64,000 bases of DNA, from sequence record PQ330092.1. One strand, written 5' to 3'. Of this stretch, positions 2,311-36,631 are shown one piece after another (the stretch's first letter is position 1; each line of letters begins with the position of its first letter). The notes under the pieces are model-generated. The model was given only the letters and a program-made list of their open reading frames with translations. It had not been told where the DNA came from and made no database searches. A program made the position numbers and the translations under genes.

Positions 2311-2712
2311 ATGACTACAGTTGATGATATCTACAGCACTATACGCAATATGAGTACAGATAGAAAAGTATTTGGTGATAAAGAAAAATCTAAGTGTTAT
2401 GGTATTGATTCTTTTGATATAATTTCTTATGAGTACAACACGAGTGGAAATAGTTCACTGAATATCGTCTGCCCTCGTGACCCAGAAAATAATTTTATGT
2501 ATGTTGAAATTAATAATGATGGAATATTTTTTACAAAAGTTTTTAAAGGTGGAATTAATTACGAACCAATTGAATGTATGAATGAAGAAACTTTCTTTCA
2601 AGAAGATACAATTATCAATTTAGGTTTTAGTTTTGATGATTATAAAACATTAGAACATGACTTTAATCGTTATTATAACGGTTTCTTAAAGGAGTTAACA
2701 ATTTATCTATGA
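2311..2712 (+). CDS. hypothetical protein with EExFFQ-type C-terminal motif
   Basis: ORF track; NEETFFQEDTII motif shared with ORFs at 18.5-19.9 kb. Confidence 0.75.
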   Translation: MTTVDDIYSTIRNMSTDRKVFGDKEKSKCYGIDSFDIISYEYNTSGNSSLNIVCPRDPENNFMYVEINNDGIFFTKVFKGGINYEPIECMNEETFFQEDTIINLGFSFDDYKTLEHDFNRYYNGFLKELTIYL

Positions 2713-3941
2713 ATAACCAATATGTTGAACAAACAATAGTGAAACACTTGGCTGGGTCACAAGCCTACGGAACCAGTACACCTGAAAGTGATACTGATTA
2801 TCGTGGTATTTTTCTTGCTAATAAAGAATTTATTCTTACGCCATTCTATAAGGTCAAAGAAGTAGCTGATAAAAATGAAGAAGATACTAAATTCTATGAG
2901 TTAAATCAGTATTTAAAATTATACACTGAAGCCAACCCTAATATATTGGAATCACTATGGGTCGATCCAGAACACATTGTAGAAAGTACTGAGATTTATG
3001 ACTATCTTCGTTCATTTAACCAAAAACTTCTTAGTTCCAAGATTGCATTTTCATACACTGGATATGCATATAATCAGATTAAGCGTATGACAAATCATCA
3101 CGGTTGGATGGATAAAGAGCGTATTGCTGAAAAACGATTAAATGAGATTTTAGAAGAACACCCTGTCGATGAGGTTCTTGCGTGGATGTATGATTCATTC
3201 CCACAGTATCTTGTTGAACGTTTAGATACATCCAACTTACATCCATTTAATGCTAAAAAGATTGATTTTGAAAAATATATGCGTGATACGTCATTGCAGT
3301 TAGTTTCGAAAAATCCATTAAAGCAATATCATTTTGTAAGATTAGTGCATAACTACACTACTGAAAAAATTCTTGATCGTGATTTCAATTTATTGAATTT
3401 TAATAATGGTTATGAACTAATTCATTACGGAGAAAACATTTTTGCGATTATTAAAAATCCGAATGAAAGCACTATCAACGGTGATGGATCATTGCGTTAT
3501 TTTTCTAAAGAGCGTAGTACTGAAGAGTTGAAAACCAAACCAGAACTAATTGTCAAATTTAACGAAAAAGAATATCAGGAAAATAGTGAGAATAGGAAAA
3601 GTTATCATAAATGGAAAGAAAATCGTAATGCCAAACGTGCTATTTTAGAATCACAACACGGATACGATTGTAAACATGCTATGCACACAATCCGACTTTT
3701 GAATAGTGCAGAAGAAGCATTACAAAGTGGAATTATTCAAGTTAAACGACCAGATGCACAAATGTTGATGGATATTCGTAATGGTAAATGGAAGTATGAA
3801 GAAGTATTAGAATATTTCGATGATAAAGTACAATACATTCGTGATGTTCTATATAAGAAATCAGTACTTCCTAAAAAACCAAACATCAAGTTAGCATCAA
3901 AAATTATCATTGATATTAGAGAAATGCAATGGTATAAGTAA
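2709..3941 (+). CDS. pol-beta superfamily nucleotidyltransferase (RlaP/NrdC.11-like)
   Basis: AGSQAYGTSTPESDTDYRGIF (GS...DxD signature); C-terminal YDCKHAMHTIRLL helix typical of this family. Confidence 0.8.
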   Translation: MNNQYVEQTIVKHLAGSQAYGTSTPESDTDYRGIFLANKEFILTPFYKVKEVADKNEEDTKFYELNQYLKLYTEANPNILESLWVDPEHIVESTEIYDYLRSFNQKLLSSKIAFSYTGYAYNQIKRMTNHHGWMDKERIAEKRLNEILEEHPVDEVLAWMYDSFPQYLVERLDTSNLHPFNAKKIDFEKYMRDTSLQLVSKNPLKQYHFVRLVHNYTTEKILDRDFNLLNFNNGYELIHYGENIFAIIKNPNESTINGDGSLRYFSKERSTEELKTKPELIVKFNEKEYQENSENRKSYHKWKENRNAKRAILESQHGYDCKHAMHTIRLLNSAEEALQSGIIQVKRPDAQMLMDIRNGKWKYEEVLEYFDDKVQYIRDVLYKKSVLPKKPNIKLASKIIIDIREMQWYK

Positions 3942-4647: not shown

Positions 4648-7437
4648 ATGTTAAACAATAATATTGATAATATTGTACAACTTCTTTATGGGCATCACAA
4701 ATTTATTGAAAGAAATACTGGTGATACAATAGACCCAACAGTACAACATTATGTGGTGAATAATCAGGGTGTTTTGGCGAACAACCGTCATTTTATTAAC
4801 TATTCTGCAATGGAAGGTCAACCAAACGGTGACGGGACAACAGAAGGTCAAAGTCTATTAATTTTAGGATACATTTATGCGTATCTGGCAACAAATGATC
4901 CAATGTTTTTAGATAAAGCCAAATGGTACTGGGATGCATATCATCAGTACTTTTATGCTGGACGTGAATTACCAGATCCACCTACACCACTACAATGTAA
5001 CTGGATAGTTAATGCCAAAGAACCTATATTGGCTAACTGGCCTTTAGCTGATGATGGATGGCCTACACATGGTGGTTTCAAGGGTGTAGAATTTACATTT
5101 ACAAATGGACAATGTAAAATACCACATGGTGCACCTTATTATGGTCAGTTCTTGGATAAAGTAACATTTGCATTCAAAGGTGCTTTAGCATGGAACCAAA
5201 TAAATGCGTCAGTAAAAGCATTATTACCAGATGGTAGTGTTGATTGGGATACACCAGGTGAACAATATGATGTTGACTGGATTATCGATTTCATGGGTAG
5301 AAAAATCGACTGGGATGGTAATATTTTAGCAGAAGGTTTTGACGAATCTGAAAAAGGAACTGTTCAATTAAAGAATACAACAATTAATGGTGTATATAAA
5401 TTAAATTTTGCAAATCGTCAACCAGTAGAATATGGTGGTGTGATAATTCAACGAAATGAAATGCAACACAACCGCCCACTTCATGTTCCAATTGATTTGG
5501 AATTTGCGGATAACGCATCAGATGCAGAATTGTGGTTTAGTGATGCTTCTTATTTGTTATATAAAATAACAAAAGAAAGAAAACATTATTTGGGTTGGAA
5601 ATGTTCACTACTAACGTGTTATGCTTATGGTGATATTGACTCCAGAGATAAATTTTTCAGACAAAGTACAATTGTAACCACACCATTCACTGATGGTATT
5701 TCCTATGAATATTTTTATCCAAGTGATGCTATTGCTAAGTTTGGTAGAAATTCTCTAGGATATATTACTATCAGGCAAGACCAAAGTGCACAAAGTACAA
5801 TGGAACAACAAGCTATTTGGTTCAGGGTCAATGCTGATTCTAAATTACTTGTAGACTATGGTGGTGTATGTGATGATGGTAAGCCGTTATCATTTAAACC
5901 AGTACTGGAATTGTCAAAAACAAAAAATGACCATGATGTTGTTCGTTATCGTTGTGGCTTACCGGAAAGTAAAGACCAAAATATCACACATTCATTAACA
6001 CCTTTAAGTGCATTTGTTAGAGAAAAGAAAGCAGATGGTTCCCCTTATATAATTGCTGATAGTAGAATTGTTGTTCCTTATGGTGCAGCTACGTCCGAAA
6101 TGATATATAGTACTGATATATTAGTTACACGCCGCGATACCATTAATCAGTTAGTTTGTGGTGAAGATGATGGTGCTGTTATTGGATTTTGGCTATTAGC
6201 AACAAATAAGTCTGAAGTTAAATCTTTTACCTATCGTTCATATGAAGATGATTACAATATAAGAATTGTAGATGATAATGGTTGGAGATGGTGGTGGATG
6301 ATTCCTGCAACACACGGGGAATGGACTACAATCACACTAAGTCCCGATACATTACGTTTATCTGGGTATCAGCCAAATCATCCAAGTTCTGACCCAAGAC
6401 CAGATGCACCAGTTTATAGTGAACTAGAAGATATTACTATTTTACCTGATACAACCCCAGTAGATGGTGTTGCTGCAATAATTGATTGGTATTGTATTAA
6501 TGACATTCCAGAATTATACACGGATGCTGACGGTGATGACTATACTATGACATTTTCAATAACAATTGCAGGTGAATCACCATATACTGCACAGTTAGGG
6601 GATTGTGTAATCAAAGATTATTTGTTAAACTCATTGCATTACACACCAGGAACAATACCATTTTCTAACATCACTGACCCGTATGCGAACCAGTATTCAG
6701 GATGGCGTGGTTTACCGTATCCAGGTTATCAATATCCTGTGATATATTGTTTTAAAGACCAGCCAGTAGATAACACACGCTTAGGAAACATGTTAAGCTT
6801 TATGAAAGATTCCCAAACATGGTTTACTCAACAATTCGGTACTGTTGGTCCGTGTGCACAAGCATATGTTTGGAACCGCTGGGATAACTTAAAATATGGT
6901 GAACCAGATACATTTACTATGCTACATTGGGGTGATCAAGCATGGAGTGGGTATGAACCACGTGCGTTCTTTGGGGCTGCCAGAGCATGGCAAGAACTCG
7001 CAGAGAGAGGAATTGAACCACCAGCAGATCTTGTTGAATTTTGTGAGAATTGGATTCACTTTTTAATTCAATTTCAAAAAGATAATGATGGTCGTTCACC
7101 AACAATCTTCAATAAAGATGGCACAGTTGAAGGTCCAGATTGGGACTTTACAGGTCATATGTGTGGGTTGTGGTTAGCTGGGGCTTGTGCTGCTGGATTG
7201 GCTGGATGTAAAATAGAAGGTCTAACAACACTCGCTGATAACTTAGTTCTCGAACTTCAAAAGAATTATGTTATTGTAAATCCAGGTTCACCAATGAATG
7301 GTTCATGGAGTCCAGCAGTTAGAGAAGGTACTGATAATGGTATGTTTTTTGGTTTCTGGGCAGGTGAGATTATGCGTGGATTGGGATTATACTCAATGTA
7401 CCGCTTAAACACACCAAATCGTTTCCGTGATTTATAA
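4648..7437 (+). CDS. large glycoside hydrolase family 8-like (alpha/alpha toroid) protein with inserted beta-rich regions; probably virion-associated
   Basis: TTEGQSL..G..YA.LA.ND and NASDAELW match BcsZ/GH8 motifs TSEGQSY and NSASDGDVW; lies in a late-promoter operon. Confidence 0.6.
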   Translation: MLNNNIDNIVQLLYGHHKFIERNTGDTIDPTVQHYVVNNQGVLANNRHFINYSAMEGQPNGDGTTEGQSLLILGYIYAYLATNDPMFLDKAKWYWDAYHQYFYAGRELPDPPTPLQCNWIVNAKEPILANWPLADDGWPTHGGFKGVEFTFTNGQCKIPHGAPYYGQFLDKVTFAFKGALAWNQINASVKALLPDGSVDWDTPGEQYDVDWIIDFMGRKIDWDGNILAEGFDESEKGTVQLKNTTINGVYKLNFANRQPVEYGGVIIQRNEMQHNRPLHVPIDLEFADNASDAELWFSDASYLLYKITKERKHYLGWKCSLLTCYAYGDIDSRDKFFRQSTIVTTPFTDGISYEYFYPSDAIAKFGRNSLGYITIRQDQSAQSTMEQQAIWFRVNADSKLLVDYGGVCDDGKPLSFKPVLELSKTKNDHDVVRYRCGLPESKDQNITHSLTPLSAFVREKKADGSPYIIADSRIVVPYGAATSEMIYSTDILVTRRDTINQLVCGEDDGAVIGFWLLATNKSEVKSFTYRSYEDDYNIRIVDDNGWRWWWMIPATHGEWTTITLSPDTLRLSGYQPNHPSSDPRPDAPVYSELEDITILPDTTPVDGVAAIIDWYCINDIPELYTDADGDDYTMTFSITIAGESPYTAQLGDCVIKDYLLNSLHYTPGTIPFSNITDPYANQYSGWRGLPYPGYQYPVIYCFKDQPVDNTRLGNMLSFMKDSQTWFTQQFGTVGPCAQAYVWNRWDNLKYGEPDTFTMLHWGDQAWSGYEPRAFFGAARAWQELAERGIEPPADLVEFCENWIHFLIQFQKDNDGRSPTIFNKDGTVEGPDWDFTGHMCGLWLAGACAAGLAGCKIEGLTTLADNLVLELQKNYVIVNPGSPMNGSWSPAVREGTDNGMFFGFWAGEIMRGLGLYSMYRLNTPNRFRDL

Positions 7438-7438
7438 C

Positions 7439-7467
7439 TTGACATAGAAAAAGTAATTATGTATAAT
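7439..7467 (+). promoter_or_regulatory. sigma70-type promoter
   Basis: TTGACA-17 nt-TATAAT with TG extension. Confidence 0.85.
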
Positions 7468-7468
7468 C

Positions 7469-7498
7469 AGAGAACTTCATATGGAGTTCTCTTTTTTT
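7469..7498 (+). terminator. Rho-independent terminator for the upstream late operon
   Basis: agagaacttc-atat-ggagttctct then T6. Confidence 0.8.
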
Positions 7499-7511
7499 AT
7501 AAGGTGATAAA

Positions 7512-7931
7512 ATGTTAAATGAACGTATTAAAAATGCACTACATGTATTGAACCAAGAAGTAAATTCTATTGATAAAAGTACTGACCGTTATAAAGTAAT
7601 GCATGAAATCAAACAAGAATTGGAATCTATTAATAAGGGAGAATGGTGGTATCTTCAGCCCGAATATCAAACTCGTGAATTAAACGATGTTGAAAAAGAA
7701 ATTGTCAAATTCATCACTACTCGTTACTGTGATACATCAGAGAATGATGTATCAGCGAACTTCAATCTTACTAAATTGGAAGTCGAAGAAAAATTCAATT
7801 TTGATTGGCTTGATTGGCTTGAAATGGTCATGGAACTAGAAGAAAAATTCAATGTTGAAGTTGATGAAAAGTTCGAGAATAATGAAACTAAGCTGTATGA
7901 ACTAGCAGAACATATTCAAAAAATGCTGTAA
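7512..7931 (+). CDS. acyl-carrier-protein-like protein lacking the phosphopantetheine serine, with an N-terminal extension
   Basis: C-terminal 80 aa align by eye with AcpP: DWLDWLEMVMELEEKFNVEV vs [20 protein letters not shown]. Confidence 0.7.
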   Translation: MLNERIKNALHVLNQEVNSIDKSTDRYKVMHEIKQELESINKGEWWYLQPEYQTRELNDVEKEIVKFITTRYCDTSENDVSANFNLTKLEVEEKFNFDWLDWLEMVMELEEKFNVEVDEKFENNETKLYELAEHIQKML

Positions 7932-7984
7932 ACCTATACAATTGTATACTCTAAATAATATCATCAACTATAGGAGATATTATT

Positions 7985-8359
7985 ATGAGTATGTTAGAAA
8001 TAATTGTTTCAAAAATTCTGATTCCATTTTGGAAACCAATTTCTTTTGTATTATTGATTGGCGGTTCAGCTTATGCTGGTTGGGAAGCTAATACTTATTA
8101 CAGTGGCTATCAACAAAGCATAGAGCAACAAATAGCTAAAAAAGTTGATACCGCCTTGGATAAAATGCAACAAGAAAATGCAAAAAATTACCTTGAAACG
8201 AAAAAAATCATGGAAGATAATGCTAAAGTTATTGAAACAAAGGTTCCTTTTATTGTAGAACGTGAAGTTTATAAGAATGTATGTTTAGATGAAGATGGTG
8301 TAAAAGTACTGAATGAACTAAAACAAAATTCTCAAGCTGCGAGGAATAAATTCAAATGA
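7985..8359 (+). CDS. inner-membrane spanin (Rz-like)
   Basis: N-terminal TM helix, coiled-coil, C-terminal Cys; TAAATA at 7952; directly followed by a lipoprotein. Confidence 0.75.
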   Translation: MSMLEIIVSKILIPFWKPISFVLLIGGSAYAGWEANTYYSGYQQSIEQQIAKKVDTALDKMQQENAKNYLETKKIMEDNAKVIETKVPFIVEREVYKNVCLDEDGVKVLNELKQNSQAARNKFK

Positions 8360-8664
8360 AAAAATTATTAGTTCCGTTTATTTCTTTTTTAATTATAAGT
8401 GGATGTGCCGAACAAGTAAAACTACAATCCCCTGCACCAATTAAACAAGAAATTCTGTTAGAAAGATGTGATGATGATACACCTCTACCACAAAAAATTA
8501 TGATTGACAAAAATGGTTTTAAAGGTTATGATGGTGCAGAAATTCTTAAAGTACTTACTCGTTGGGATGCAGTCTACAATGAATGTGCTTTAAAACACGA
8601 CGCATTGATTAAAACTATTCGTGATTTACAAGGTAAAGATATTAAAATCAATATCAAGGAATAA
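8356..8664 (+). CDS. outer-membrane lipoprotein spanin (Rz1-like)
   Basis: Signal peptide with lipobox ISGC; Pro-rich; 4-nt overlap with i-spanin. Confidence 0.75.
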   Translation: MKKLLVPFISFLIISGCAEQVKLQSPAPIKQEILLERCDDDTPLPQKIMIDKNGFKGYDGAEILKVLTRWDAVYNECALKHDALIKTIRDLQGKDIKINIKE

Positions 8665-8665
8665 A

Positions 8666-9277
8666 ATGAACAAATATCATGTTTACTATACGACAAAATT
8701 ATCACTTCTTGAAGAATTAAATCAACGAAGTACTAAGATGAAACGCTACACTTTAAATGGTATTACTTTTCGATATTTCCCACAAAAAGTTCTTACTTTT
8801 GTTAAGAATCCAAAATGCGTGGCATGTGGGATTGAAGCTACTGAAGTACGCATTGAACGTTCATTATGTTCTGATCCAGTATATGGTAAACCACATTTAA
8901 ATGTATATGCTGTATGTGGTCTTTATGAAGTTTTAATGACAGTTGACCATAATCATCTGGCATCTAAGGGTGGACCTGATTTAGAGTCAAACTTTAATAC
9001 TATGTGCTCCAGATGTAATCAACTACGTTCGAATAAAACTGAAACAGTTGATGAGTTTCTTGAGAAAGTTAAAGGTCGTAATCTTCTCCAAGAACATATG
9101 AATAATTTCTTTAATGTACAAAAAAAGAAAAATAACATTGACAAGTCGAAACTACTAGAAGAACGTAGGTTACGTCAAGAATTATGGGAAACTGATCATC
9201 TATGGCATGTTCGAGAGTTTGGTCGTCATATGAAAGCTTTGAAAAAAGAACAGAAGAAATTGAATAAACATGATTGA
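8666..9277 (+). CDS. HNH endonuclease
   Basis: CVACG ... TVDHNHLASKGG..N...MCSRCNQLRSNK; start placed at ATG 8666 after AAGGA. Confidence 0.8.
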   Translation: MNKYHVYYTTKLSLLEELNQRSTKMKRYTLNGITFRYFPQKVLTFVKNPKCVACGIEATEVRIERSLCSDPVYGKPHLNVYAVCGLYEVLMTVDHNHLASKGGPDLESNFNTMCSRCNQLRSNKTETVDEFLEKVKGRNLLQEHMNNFFNVQKKKNNIDKSKLLEERRLRQELWETDHLWHVREFGRHMKALKKEQKKLNKHD

Positions 9278-9288
9278 TATGATATTAT

Positions 9289-9318
9289 AGGGACTTGAGT
9301 ATTCAAGTCCTTTTTTTT
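9289..9318 (+). terminator. Rho-independent terminator
   Basis: gggacttga-gtat-tcaagtcct then T-run. Confidence 0.85.
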
Positions 9319-9329
9319 GGAGAAAATAA

Positions 9330-9686
9330 ATGAAATCTAAAATCTTTTTACCACAATTAATGTGGCATCTAGCAGAGTTAGATGAAAATGATGAATATAC
9401 GGACTATGGTGCATGGGATGACAGTACTGAAACTTTTAAACCAGATGTAAAATATAAAATCATCTGCAATGAAAGCAAAGGACACAAAAGGTGGACTGAA
9501 GAATTTGATCTCGTATTTCTTGACATGAGCACAAATAAGTTTTATCATTGTAATTATGAACGAGGTTTAACAGAAGATAGACCAGTACAACCATTCAGTA
9601 CTGAAACTGATGGTATTAAGTGCAATGAAGTTTCTGTTACCAGAGAAGAAATTATCACTTATCGAACTTTGTGGAAATATTTGTAA
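9330..9686 (+). CDS. hypothetical protein
   Basis: GGAG SD; ORF track. Confidence 0.75.
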   Translation: MKSKIFLPQLMWHLAELDENDEYTDYGAWDDSTETFKPDVKYKIICNESKGHKRWTEEFDLVFLDMSTNKFYHCNYERGLTEDRPVQPFSTETDGIKCNEVSVTREEIITYRTLWKYL

Positions 9687-9687
9687 A

Positions 9688-10086
9688 ATGCTTAAAGAAT
9701 TAGATTTTTCAAACTTAGAAATTATCAGTGCTGTAAAAAACATTTCCGATATGGGAGATGAGAAAGCAGTTCTTGTTACTATTACTTTTGTAAAAGAAAA
9801 AGATAGCTATAGCCATTTAACTGGTATTGAAGAACTAATTCATAAAACCAATCTTGAGAATGATGGTAAACTCATCAAGCTTCAGGCTTCCTACACGCAA
9901 AAAACGTCAAATTTTATAGACCTAAATAATGTAGTCAAGGTGGTATACAATCATCCTGAACACACATATAGGAACACGACAAGAAATGAAAATGTTGCTA
10001 ACGATTCGAATATTATCGAAGATGTTGAATTCATAAACACAATTTTTGATCGTTGTTCTAAGGATTTAAAAAAAGTATACATGTAA
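9688..10086 (+). CDS. hypothetical protein
   Basis: ORF track; start moved to ATG 9688 just after the previous stop. Confidence 0.7.
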   Translation: MLKELDFSNLEIISAVKNISDMGDEKAVLVTITFVKEKDSYSHLTGIEELIHKTNLENDGKLIKLQASYTQKTSNFIDLNNVVKVVYNHPEHTYRNTTRNENVANDSNIIEDVEFINTIFDRCSKDLKKVYM

Positions 10087-36235: not shown

Positions 36236-36631
36236 ATGCAATATAATTATCGTGAACTAGTTGAAGCGTTAGACGAAATTACCGGAAGAGATGAAGACGA
36301 AAGTTTTTCAGTTGAAGTTGAATCCGATGTTGTAGCAGTTGATGTTCTTAAGGATATTACCAAATGTCTTATTGATATTGTTGATAAGATTAAATCTGGT
36401 GAAGACCAAAAAGAAATTGTAGATAAACTACAAAAAGCCTGTGACATTTTGTCTGACATTCGATATAATGATGAAAGTACTGAAGTTGCTGATGAAGAAG
36501 TGTTGGAAGCCATTGCAGGTTGTTTTGGAACTGAAGGTATGGGACCAACAATTGACAAAGAAGGCGTACAACACTATAATGAGCCTGGTGCACCATCTTA
36601 TGCTGCACGTCAAGGTTTTGTTGGAGACTAA
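36236..36631 (+). CDS. acidic hypothetical protein
   Basis: ORF track; coupled to previous gene. Confidence 0.7.
   Translation: MQYNYRELVEALDEITGRDEDESFSVEVESDVVAVDVLKDITKCLIDIVDKIKSGEDQKEIVDKLQKACDILSDIRYNDESTEVADEEVLEAIAGCFGTEGMGPTIDKEGVQHYNEPGAPSYAARQGFVGD

Follow-up and report, generated by a model that had tools for sequence, protein, structure and literature searches.

An acyl carrier protein-like gene of Asteriusvirus jumbo coliphages with tryptophan at the phosphopantetheine-attachment site

The subject of this report is a small gene on the plus strand (positions 7512-7931) of a 64,000-nucleotide stretch of sequence record PQ330092.1, here called the window, whose product resembles acyl carrier proteins (ACPs). 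The window comes from an Asteriusvirus (PBECO4/121Q-type) jumbo coliphage; positions 7000-8700 are matched at 100% identity by Escherichia phages JP4 and BAU.Micro_ELP-22 and share 98-99.6% identity with PBECO4, 121Q, phAPEC6 and some 15 further jumbo coliphages with genomes of 320-385 kb. The gene encodes 139 amino acids (aa; 16.9 kDa, pI 4.6) and matches PHROG 18343, a family annotated as of unknown function, over its full length (residues 2-139 against profile positions 1-138 of 138, E=3.7e-61). The phosphopantetheine-attachment serine of the D-S-L motif is absent from the protein, and Trp99 occupies that column. As the missing serine would make 4'-phosphopantetheinylation impossible, and with it a carrier role, we propose that this is probably a non-carrier ACP-fold protein that works by binding.

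Predicted fold and the attachment site

The first-pass annotation of the window, made from the letters alone, had noticed that the C-terminal 80 aa follow AcpP helix by helix. This likeness was recovered as a fold over the C-terminal 84 aa, while a separate N-terminal domain (aa 1-55) had been missed. In an AlphaFold2 (AF2) model built on an alignment of 34 family members, with a predicted local distance difference test score (pLDDT) of 83 overall and ~90 over residues 59-138, the ACP domain has helices at residues 59-71 (I), 99-113 (II), 119-122 (III) and 128-138 (IV), with a long loop between the first two. All of the top 50 Foldseek matches in the PDB were ACPs or carrier domains (target TM-score mostly 0.6-0.78, probability near 1 for most), and phage ACPs were matched in BFVD, so that the model shows the four-helix-bundle fold of ACPs. 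A phmmer search of PDB sequences returned almost exclusively ACPs, at a modest E-value of ~2e-3, and placed Trp99 opposite the serine of D-S-L. The earlier reading of DWL in place of DSL was confirmed, with Trp99 standing against Ser36 of AcpP in both HMMER and BLASTP. The suggested checks by profile and by structure came out divided: AF2 and Foldseek gave an ACP fold, PF00550 (PP-binding) gave no match for the window protein, and two further curated profiles were matched below threshold. The window protein is a divergent ACP relative, below annotated-grade ACPs.

Compared with Escherichia coli AcpP and other bacterial type II ACPs, the domain shares the four-helix bundle, the acidity (pI 4.2, against 4.05 for AcpP) and the helix-II motif D-x-L-D-x-x-E-x-V-M-x-L-E-E-x-F. 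By BLASTP, residues 93-122 align with residues 31-61 of AcpP (15/31 identical, E=2e-6), and AcpP D35, L37, D38, E41, V43, M44, L46, E47, E48 and F50 are all matched, so the acidic helix-II residues to which the first-pass annotation had drawn attention are indeed kept. Because the similarity is significant only in this helix-II stretch, the gene is not a recent capture. Unlike AcpP, the protein is phage-encoded, carries tryptophan for Ser36 and a 55-aa N-terminal extension, has a loop I about 7 aa longer and stays below the curated ACP cut-offs. The only Ser or Cys residues of the ACP domain are C73, S76 and S81, all within the loop, and no Ser, Thr or Cys was found at or beside position 99 at the N-terminus of helix II.

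The N-terminal domain is a helical hairpin (helices 4-18 and 23-41) followed by a linker of low AF2 confidence. Tyr27 is invariant in alignments of 34-35 sequences and Arg26 is near-invariant, and this R-Y motif of the hairpin is present in the window protein. Among the matches listed, the RaK2-like family alone shows this domain, and never apart from the ACP part save in one 44-aa fragment (P0064). Full-length relatives superpose poorly (root-mean-square deviation, rmsd, 16-18 A), and no fixed domain arrangement is visible. A search with the family profile found 3102 proteins at E<=1e-3, and the majority of the 150 listed were ACP-sized and matched over the ACP part. When the profile matches covering several stretches were screened for Rosetta-stone fusions, they proved to be tandem ACPs and one EAD11+ACP protein, none of which contained the N-terminal domain. 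Single-domain phage ACPs (PHROG 5934 and 4154; ViI-like phages, phiCbK and others) show weak but significant similarity in sequence and fold; they have ~80-110 aa and one domain, whereas the window family forms its own PHROG.

Tryptophan at this site is neither a sequencing error nor a strain-specific mutation. The TGG codon was found in the window, 121Q, phAPEC6, WPEC5, TH47 and CMSTMSU, and tryptophan in the cluster representatives P0002-4, P0010 and P0011, so that TGG is present in all genomes and W in all representatives examined of what we call the W clade; the proposed check of homologues for W or S thus returned tryptophan in the closest relatives and serine in the next grade out, and the refuting case of serine in every close homologue did not arise. 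The first-pass annotation had further described a 9-nt tandem duplication (tgattggct twice, at 7802-7819). The repeat is present in a register shifted by one base (7801-7818), but it did not arise by duplication: Ser-bearing orthologues have FDSLDW(L/V)EM where the window has FDWLDWLEM, with no difference in length around the motif, and this equal spacing means that the change was a substitution and that nothing was inserted. At the DNA level, GAT TCA (CTT/CTG/TTA) GAC TGG in the Ser-bearing relatives corresponds to GAT TGG CTT GAT TGG CTT in the window. The exact 9/9 repeat is confined to the window's subclade, and 121Q/phAPEC6 and WPEC5/TH47 have 8/9; the repeat is the D-x-L-D-x-L quasi-repeat inherent in the ACP motif, made exact by substitutions. 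The step from TCA to TGG takes two adjacent base changes, and one of the two routes by single steps has a stop codon as its intermediate; we infer that one templated correction from the neighbouring GA(C/T)TGGCTT copy would give both changes at once.

A longer direct repeat of 28 nt flanks the site, with copies at 7777-7804 and 7831-7858 that are identical at 25 of 28 positions, share the 15-nt exact core GAAGAAAAATTCAAT and encode LEVEEKFNFD and MELEEKFNVE on either side of DWLDWL. Protein alignments show these two stretches to be less alike in the WPEC5 clade and the Ser-grade relatives, and the repeat may reflect local templated sequence homogenisation within the gene. Y47, L57, V65, F84 and K88 are fixed in the W clade together with S99W. 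Differences between the Ser grade and the W clade include, besides S99W, A65V in helix I and L84F in the loop before helix II, and the extra hydrophobic bulk of V65 and F84 perhaps accommodates Trp99.

The serine column across the family

Orthologues, all with the ~55-aa helical hairpin fused to the ACP domain, occur in Asteriusvirus sublineages, Turkey5/JNE01, Klebsiella phages of the RaK2/K64-1 type, Pectobacterium phage CBB and about 30 metagenomic representatives, and the CBB record cites a homologue in Cronobacter phage GAP32. The family is kept in every RaK2-like lineage sampled; an IMG/VR scan for further loci returned three isolates only (121Q, RaK2 and CBB). Serine is retained in 11 of 12 representatives of a subfamily with the motif DSLD followed by Y, M, V or L. 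In the D-x-L-D-W subfamily, to which the window protein belongs, the column holds S in A4, ph0011, P0005-9 and P0040, W in the window and WPEC5 clades, T in the RaK2 type, N in Turkey5, R in P0030, E in P0041/L014, D in P0043, P0047 and P0066, and K in P0054. On the evidence of these alignments, related phages swapped the serine several times, and within this subfamily the residue is shown to be dispensable and the column free to vary. Around it, D98 is invariant and D101 and helix-II E110 nearly so in the wider alignment; D101 is invariant and E108 and F113 nearly so in the set of 34-35 sequences. The Ser-bearing orthologues (CBB_163, the ACPs of GAP32 and of Eneladusvirus/Serratia phage BF, A4_505 and that of ph0011) have the same two domains and differ in keeping DSL, the CBB clade reaching the Pfam PP-binding profile; judged by their sequences, they may still be modified by host AcpS.

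The nine W sequences form one clade in the maximum-likelihood tree (support 91/87, a single change in 93% of bootstrap trees), nested among Ser-bearing Asteriusvirus-type sequences, which indicates that the change from serine to tryptophan arose once and was retained. The ratio of nonsynonymous to synonymous substitution rates (dN/dS) is 0.17-0.30 within the W clade, 0.21 at dS 0.80 between the window and WPEC5, and 0.29-0.32 for the ACP domain alone between W subclades; the Ser-Ser pair A4/ph0011 gave 0.30-0.38, so that constraint among the W-bearing genes is no weaker than in this pair. Purifying selection on the whole gene, the ACP domain included, has been maintained after the loss of serine, with no decay. 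No truncations were seen, except in two records resembling assembly errors: the orthologue of the Salmonella phage SD-15_S21 (P0001) is annotated as a 192-aa read-through form and that of CMSTMSU (L013) within a 432-aa product that also covers the gene before it. Neither looks like a real variant, and each has the appearance of a single-base frameshift or an assembly error close to a homopolymer.

Gene order and expression signals

The features of the locus are collected in Table 1. The spanin pair lies directly downstream of the ACP-like gene in every relative examined, and the nucleotidyltransferase gene lies upstream in most, at a distance of 0 to ~3.5 kb and directly adjacent in WPEC5 and L014; the Ser-bearing orthologues share this order, as far as the nucleotidyltransferase was checked. 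Both tail-fibre genes stand between the nucleotidyltransferase and the ACP-like gene in the window and 121Q, and A4 and Turkey5 likewise have the longer one ahead of the ACP-like gene. Neither tail-fibre gene occurs in this interval in WPEC5, TH47, ph0011 or CMSTMSU. The ACP-like gene follows the nucleotidyltransferase after 10 nt in WPEC5, TH47 and CMSTMSU, and ph0011 still has a leftover piece of the 3' end of the tail gene, next to the promoter and terminator described below. The product of phAPEC6 gp314, a homologue of the 929-aa tail fibre, was detected in virions by mass spectrometry (PMC7247149).

Table 1. Features of the ACP-like gene and its surroundings (positions in the window)
Feature	Position	Strand	Evidence or remark
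RlaP-family (Pol-beta fold) nucleotidyltransferase	2709-3941	+	PF10127, 3.1e-16
Small tail-fibre protein, 178 aa	4110-4646	+	local gene order
Tail-fibre protein, 929 aa	4648-7437	+	PHROG 2871
Sigma70-type promoter, TTGACA-17 nt-TATAAT, 12/12 match	7439-7467	+	inferred start ~7474
Intrinsic-terminator hairpin (stem 7469-7492) and T-run	7469-7499	+	scan, RNA fold
Shine-Dalgarno-like AAGGTGA	7501-7507	+	ends 4 nt before ATG; from sequence
ACP-like coding sequence, 139 aa	7512-7931	+	PHROG 18343, E=3.7e-61
Family-specific N-terminal domain, aa 1-55	7512-7676	+	AF2 model, alignments
ACP-fold domain, aa 56-139, pI 4.2	7677-7928	+	HMMER, AF2, Foldseek, BLASTP
Tandem TTGATTGGC x2, encoding (F)DWLDWL	7801-7809, 7810-7818	+	repeat search
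TGG, Trp99, column of AcpP Ser36, N-terminus of helix II	7806-7808	+	HMMER, BLASTP, AF2
i-Spanin hairpin	7945-7993	+	-15.1 kcal/mol, z -4.3
Rz-like i-spanin, 124 aa	7985-8359	+	PHROG 1152, E=6.6e-29
o-Spanin-type lipoprotein, 102 aa	8356-8664	+	PHROG 2425; lipobox LIISGC visible in translation
HNH endonuclease	8621-9277		downstream of spanins
DUF7325 protein	9610-10086		PF24011, 1.1e-54

The consensus sigma70 promoter that had been assigned to the gene was found again as a perfect site, one of 2 in the 64 kb where 0.04 would be expected; the second lies at 36552-36580 (+). The promoter, along with the hairpin, is also present in 121Q, phAPEC6, A4, Turkey5 and ph0011, and is absent in WPEC5, TH47 and CMSTMSU. 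Its inferred start falls inside the 5' arm of the terminator hairpin, which folds with -13.8 kcal/mol (z -4.7) on read-through RNA and with -4.5 kcal/mol (z -0.2) on RNA starting at 7474. Such an arrangement would halt late transcripts of the tail gene yet pass those initiated at the promoter.

On the other side of the gene, the i-spanin hairpin takes up the Shine-Dalgarno sequence (GGAG, 7972-7975) and AUG (7985) of the spanin gene in base pairs. It recurs in six relatives (WPEC5, ph0011, A4, Turkey5, RaK2 and L014), with two-sided changes in 5 of 19 pairs; its positions are 1928-1982 in L009, 3413-3464 in L002 and 6429-6478 in L014. Start-masking hairpins of this kind regulate genes of phage T4, and by analogy the spanin hairpin has the look of a T4-style switch that would leave early read-through RNA untranslatable and late RNA from inside the hairpin translatable. 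The 5' arm contains a conserved late-promoter-like CTAAATA (7951-7957), resembling the late motif ATAAATA described for CBB and GAP32 (PMC5259590). The spacer ahead of the i-spanin gene holds an intrinsic terminator in CBB and L015. We read the ACP-like gene and the spanins as separate expression units, the spanins coming from late transcripts that start inside the hairpin, and this separation makes the adjacency to the spanins weak evidence of a shared function.

Possible roles of the protein

The reading we favour, to which we give a probability of roughly 40%, is that the protein behaves as a permanent apo-ACP and ties up host enzymes to which ACP docks by its helix II, disturbing envelope-lipid synthesis during takeover. 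In this model, host RNA polymerase would express the gene early from its own sigma70 promoter, and the upstream terminator and the downstream start-masking hairpin would isolate it from the late tail gene and from the spanins. The acidic helix II, which resembles that of AcpP, would make the contacts, and the N-terminal domain would contribute specificity or oligomerisation; candidate targets would be AcpS, the glycerol-3-phosphate acyltransferase PlsB and Lpx or Fab enzymes. Four observations favour this model: ancestors served by host AcpS, the AcpP contact residues that are kept, the early-type promoter and the toxicity of apo-ACP. On the first, no AcpS-like gene was found in RaK2-like phages by tblastn with an E. 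coli AcpS query, a weak negative since Sfp-type enzymes were unsearched; with no phage AcpS detectable, Ser-bearing ancestors would have needed the host enzyme, and their helix II would have been fit for host enzymes. On the last, apo-ACP arrests E. coli growth by inhibiting glycerol-3-phosphate acyltransferase (review PMC3896788). A mimic without serine would equal a permanent apo form, with the differences that the toxicity was seen with overproduced host AcpP and that PlsB is a putative target of the phage protein. SpoT, which the first-pass annotation had put forward as a target, is unlikely, since the same review reports that SpoT does not bind apo-ACP (PMC3896788). Mass spectrometry of phAPEC6 virions identified 62 proteins, and the orthologue, gp313, is not one of them (PMC7247149).

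Several observations weigh against this reading. The curated cut-offs were missed (PF14573, 18.3 against 32 bits; TIGR00517, 23.1 against 70.45), and helix II has drifted in RaK2 (DTWDWFDIMVEVSELF). The charged residues D, E, K and R at the serine column of sister proteins fit poorly with one conserved interface there. The promoter is confined to lineages with the tail gene upstream, so early timing need not hold for the whole family, and an ACP homologue was found in Eneladusvirus virion preparations (PMC7760394). Both the conserved, family-specific N-terminal domain and the recurring gene order, with the nucleotidyltransferase mostly upstream and the spanins always downstream, suggest a phage-specific partner. 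Host ACP clients nevertheless remain slightly favoured over a phage partner. The wider proposition that RaK2-like phages repeatedly made a cofactor-free ACP mimic, expressed early, that jams AcpS, PlsB, Lpx or Fab enzymes and stops envelope-lipid synthesis seems to us doubtful.

A further suggestion had been that tryptophan imitates a loaded acyl chain. Sister proteins carry T, N, R, E, D or K, a variety that weakens the idea and reveals no general requirement for a bulky hydrophobic residue. The residue is fixed in the W clade, and the mitochondrial ACP of Plasmodium falciparum provides a precedent, in which the serine is replaced by Phe113, which contributes to Isd11 binding (PMC8547962). 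In both cases the attachment serine was lost to an aromatic residue and the protein was kept, in Plasmodium as a working subunit that binds other proteins and in the window gene under selection (dN/dS ~0.2). The Plasmodium protein differs in being eukaryotic and organellar, with a LYR-protein partner, and the phage sisters tolerate polar or charged residues at the site. By this analogy, an aromatic residue replacing acyl-pantetheine could still apply to the W clade, though not as the general solution of the family.

Somewhat unlikely, and still a serious competitor, is a role as adaptor or subunit for a phage-encoded partner, for example the RlaP-type nucleotidyltransferase, in which the N-terminal hairpin with Tyr27 and Arg26 would dock and host enzymes would be no target. 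The ACP fold would then be a structural module for binding, as ACP is in the LYR-protein complexes of mitochondria. The confinement of the N-terminal domain to the RaK2-like family and its constant fusion to an ACP part are in keeping with such a role, as is the nucleotidyltransferase upstream in most relatives. Free variation at the serine column would suit an interface located elsewhere, and the Ser-less ACP that serves as a structural partner of Isd11 is a precedent (PMC8547962). However, PVP-SE1-type phages with annotated nucleotidyltransferase homologues gave no ACP-like match, which means that the two genes need not occur together; their spacing is variable, and the low-confidence linker, together with the poor superposition of relatives, points to no fixed intramolecular arrangement.

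That the gene is a decaying or neutral remnant, its carrier function gone with the serine or its N-terminal domain alone mattering, we regard as improbable. The high variability of the serine column, the sub-threshold ACP scores and the lack of an assigned function in any published genome paper checked would agree with it. It is contradicted by a dN/dS of ~0.2 at dS ~0.8 among W-bearing genes and by the selection on the ACP domain itself, by the lack of truncations apart from the two suspect records, by the invariant or nearly invariant helix-II residues, and by the presence of the gene in every RaK2-like lineage sampled.

An accessory role in lysis, in which the protein would affect lipid modification of the o-spanin or weaken the outer membrane at lysis, is about equally improbable. 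The position immediately upstream of the spanin pair invites it, and the same idea has been proposed for Eneladusvirus (PMC7760394). The two units are nonetheless separated, in Escherichia and Klebsiella phages by the hairpin masking the Shine-Dalgarno sequence and AUG, with its late motif, and in CBB and L015 by a terminator. Lipoprotein acylation by Lgt and Lnt, moreover, draws on phospholipid donors and not on acyl-ACP. A linkage of ACP and spanin genes in an unrelated phage family was not upheld either, since ~3 kb separate the ACP gene from the spanin gene in phage IME250 of the Ackermannviridae.

It is very improbable that the protein is still a carrier, using another residue or a non-canonical prosthetic group attached, for example, by the upstream Pol-beta-fold nucleotidyltransferase: CitX and MdcG are enzymes of this fold that attach prosthetic groups to ACP subunits, and the nucleotidyltransferase gene is upstream in most relatives examined, but helix II offers no Ser, Thr or Cys at or beside its N-terminus, C73, S76 and S81 lie in the loop, the site holds W, D, E, K, R or N across lineages, and the nucleotidyltransferase matches RlaP (PF10127), with no CitX or MdcG family match reported.

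Phage-encoded ACPs are widespread, yet without an assigned function in the papers checked. The RaK2 paper is silent on the gene, and those on CBB, fEgEco12 and phAPEC6 are silent on acyl carrier protein; the Eneladusvirus paper alone notes an ACP, both near the spanins and in virion mass spectrometry (PMC7760394). No paper on Ser-less phage ACPs was found, and the missing serine is undiscussed in the genome papers searched. The family-wide pattern of serine replacement is absent from the literature searched, while ACP-fold proteins without cofactor are already known. The family amounts to a natural experiment, in which one set of orthologous genes has serine or one of at least seven alternatives where the cofactor would attach, with purifying selection kept, and this sets what the ACP fold does by binding apart from what it does as a carrier. 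Ready allele pairs are available as well, for example W in the PBECO4/121Q type and S in the A4/ph0011 type. Should the partner belong to host lipid synthesis, the protein would represent a new mechanism of phage takeover and a naturally occurring protein that inhibits an essential pathway of bacteria; if cofactor-free mimics that jam host enzymes arose repeatedly, they would form a class of phage effectors not described so far. If the partner is a phage protein, the family would correspond, in bacterial viruses, to the ACPs that serve as structural subunits in mitochondria.

Two observations concern the genes beyond the spanins. A near-consensus promoter (11/12) at 8504-8532, inside the o-spanin gene, precedes the HNH endonuclease gene, and a strong terminator-like hairpin (9289-9312) follows it; the endonuclease gene with its promoter and terminator may be a mobile homing-endonuclease cassette. 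A DUF7325 gene lies a few genes downstream of the spanins in the window and also in L014 and L015, the two distant contigs of metagenomic origin that were examined.

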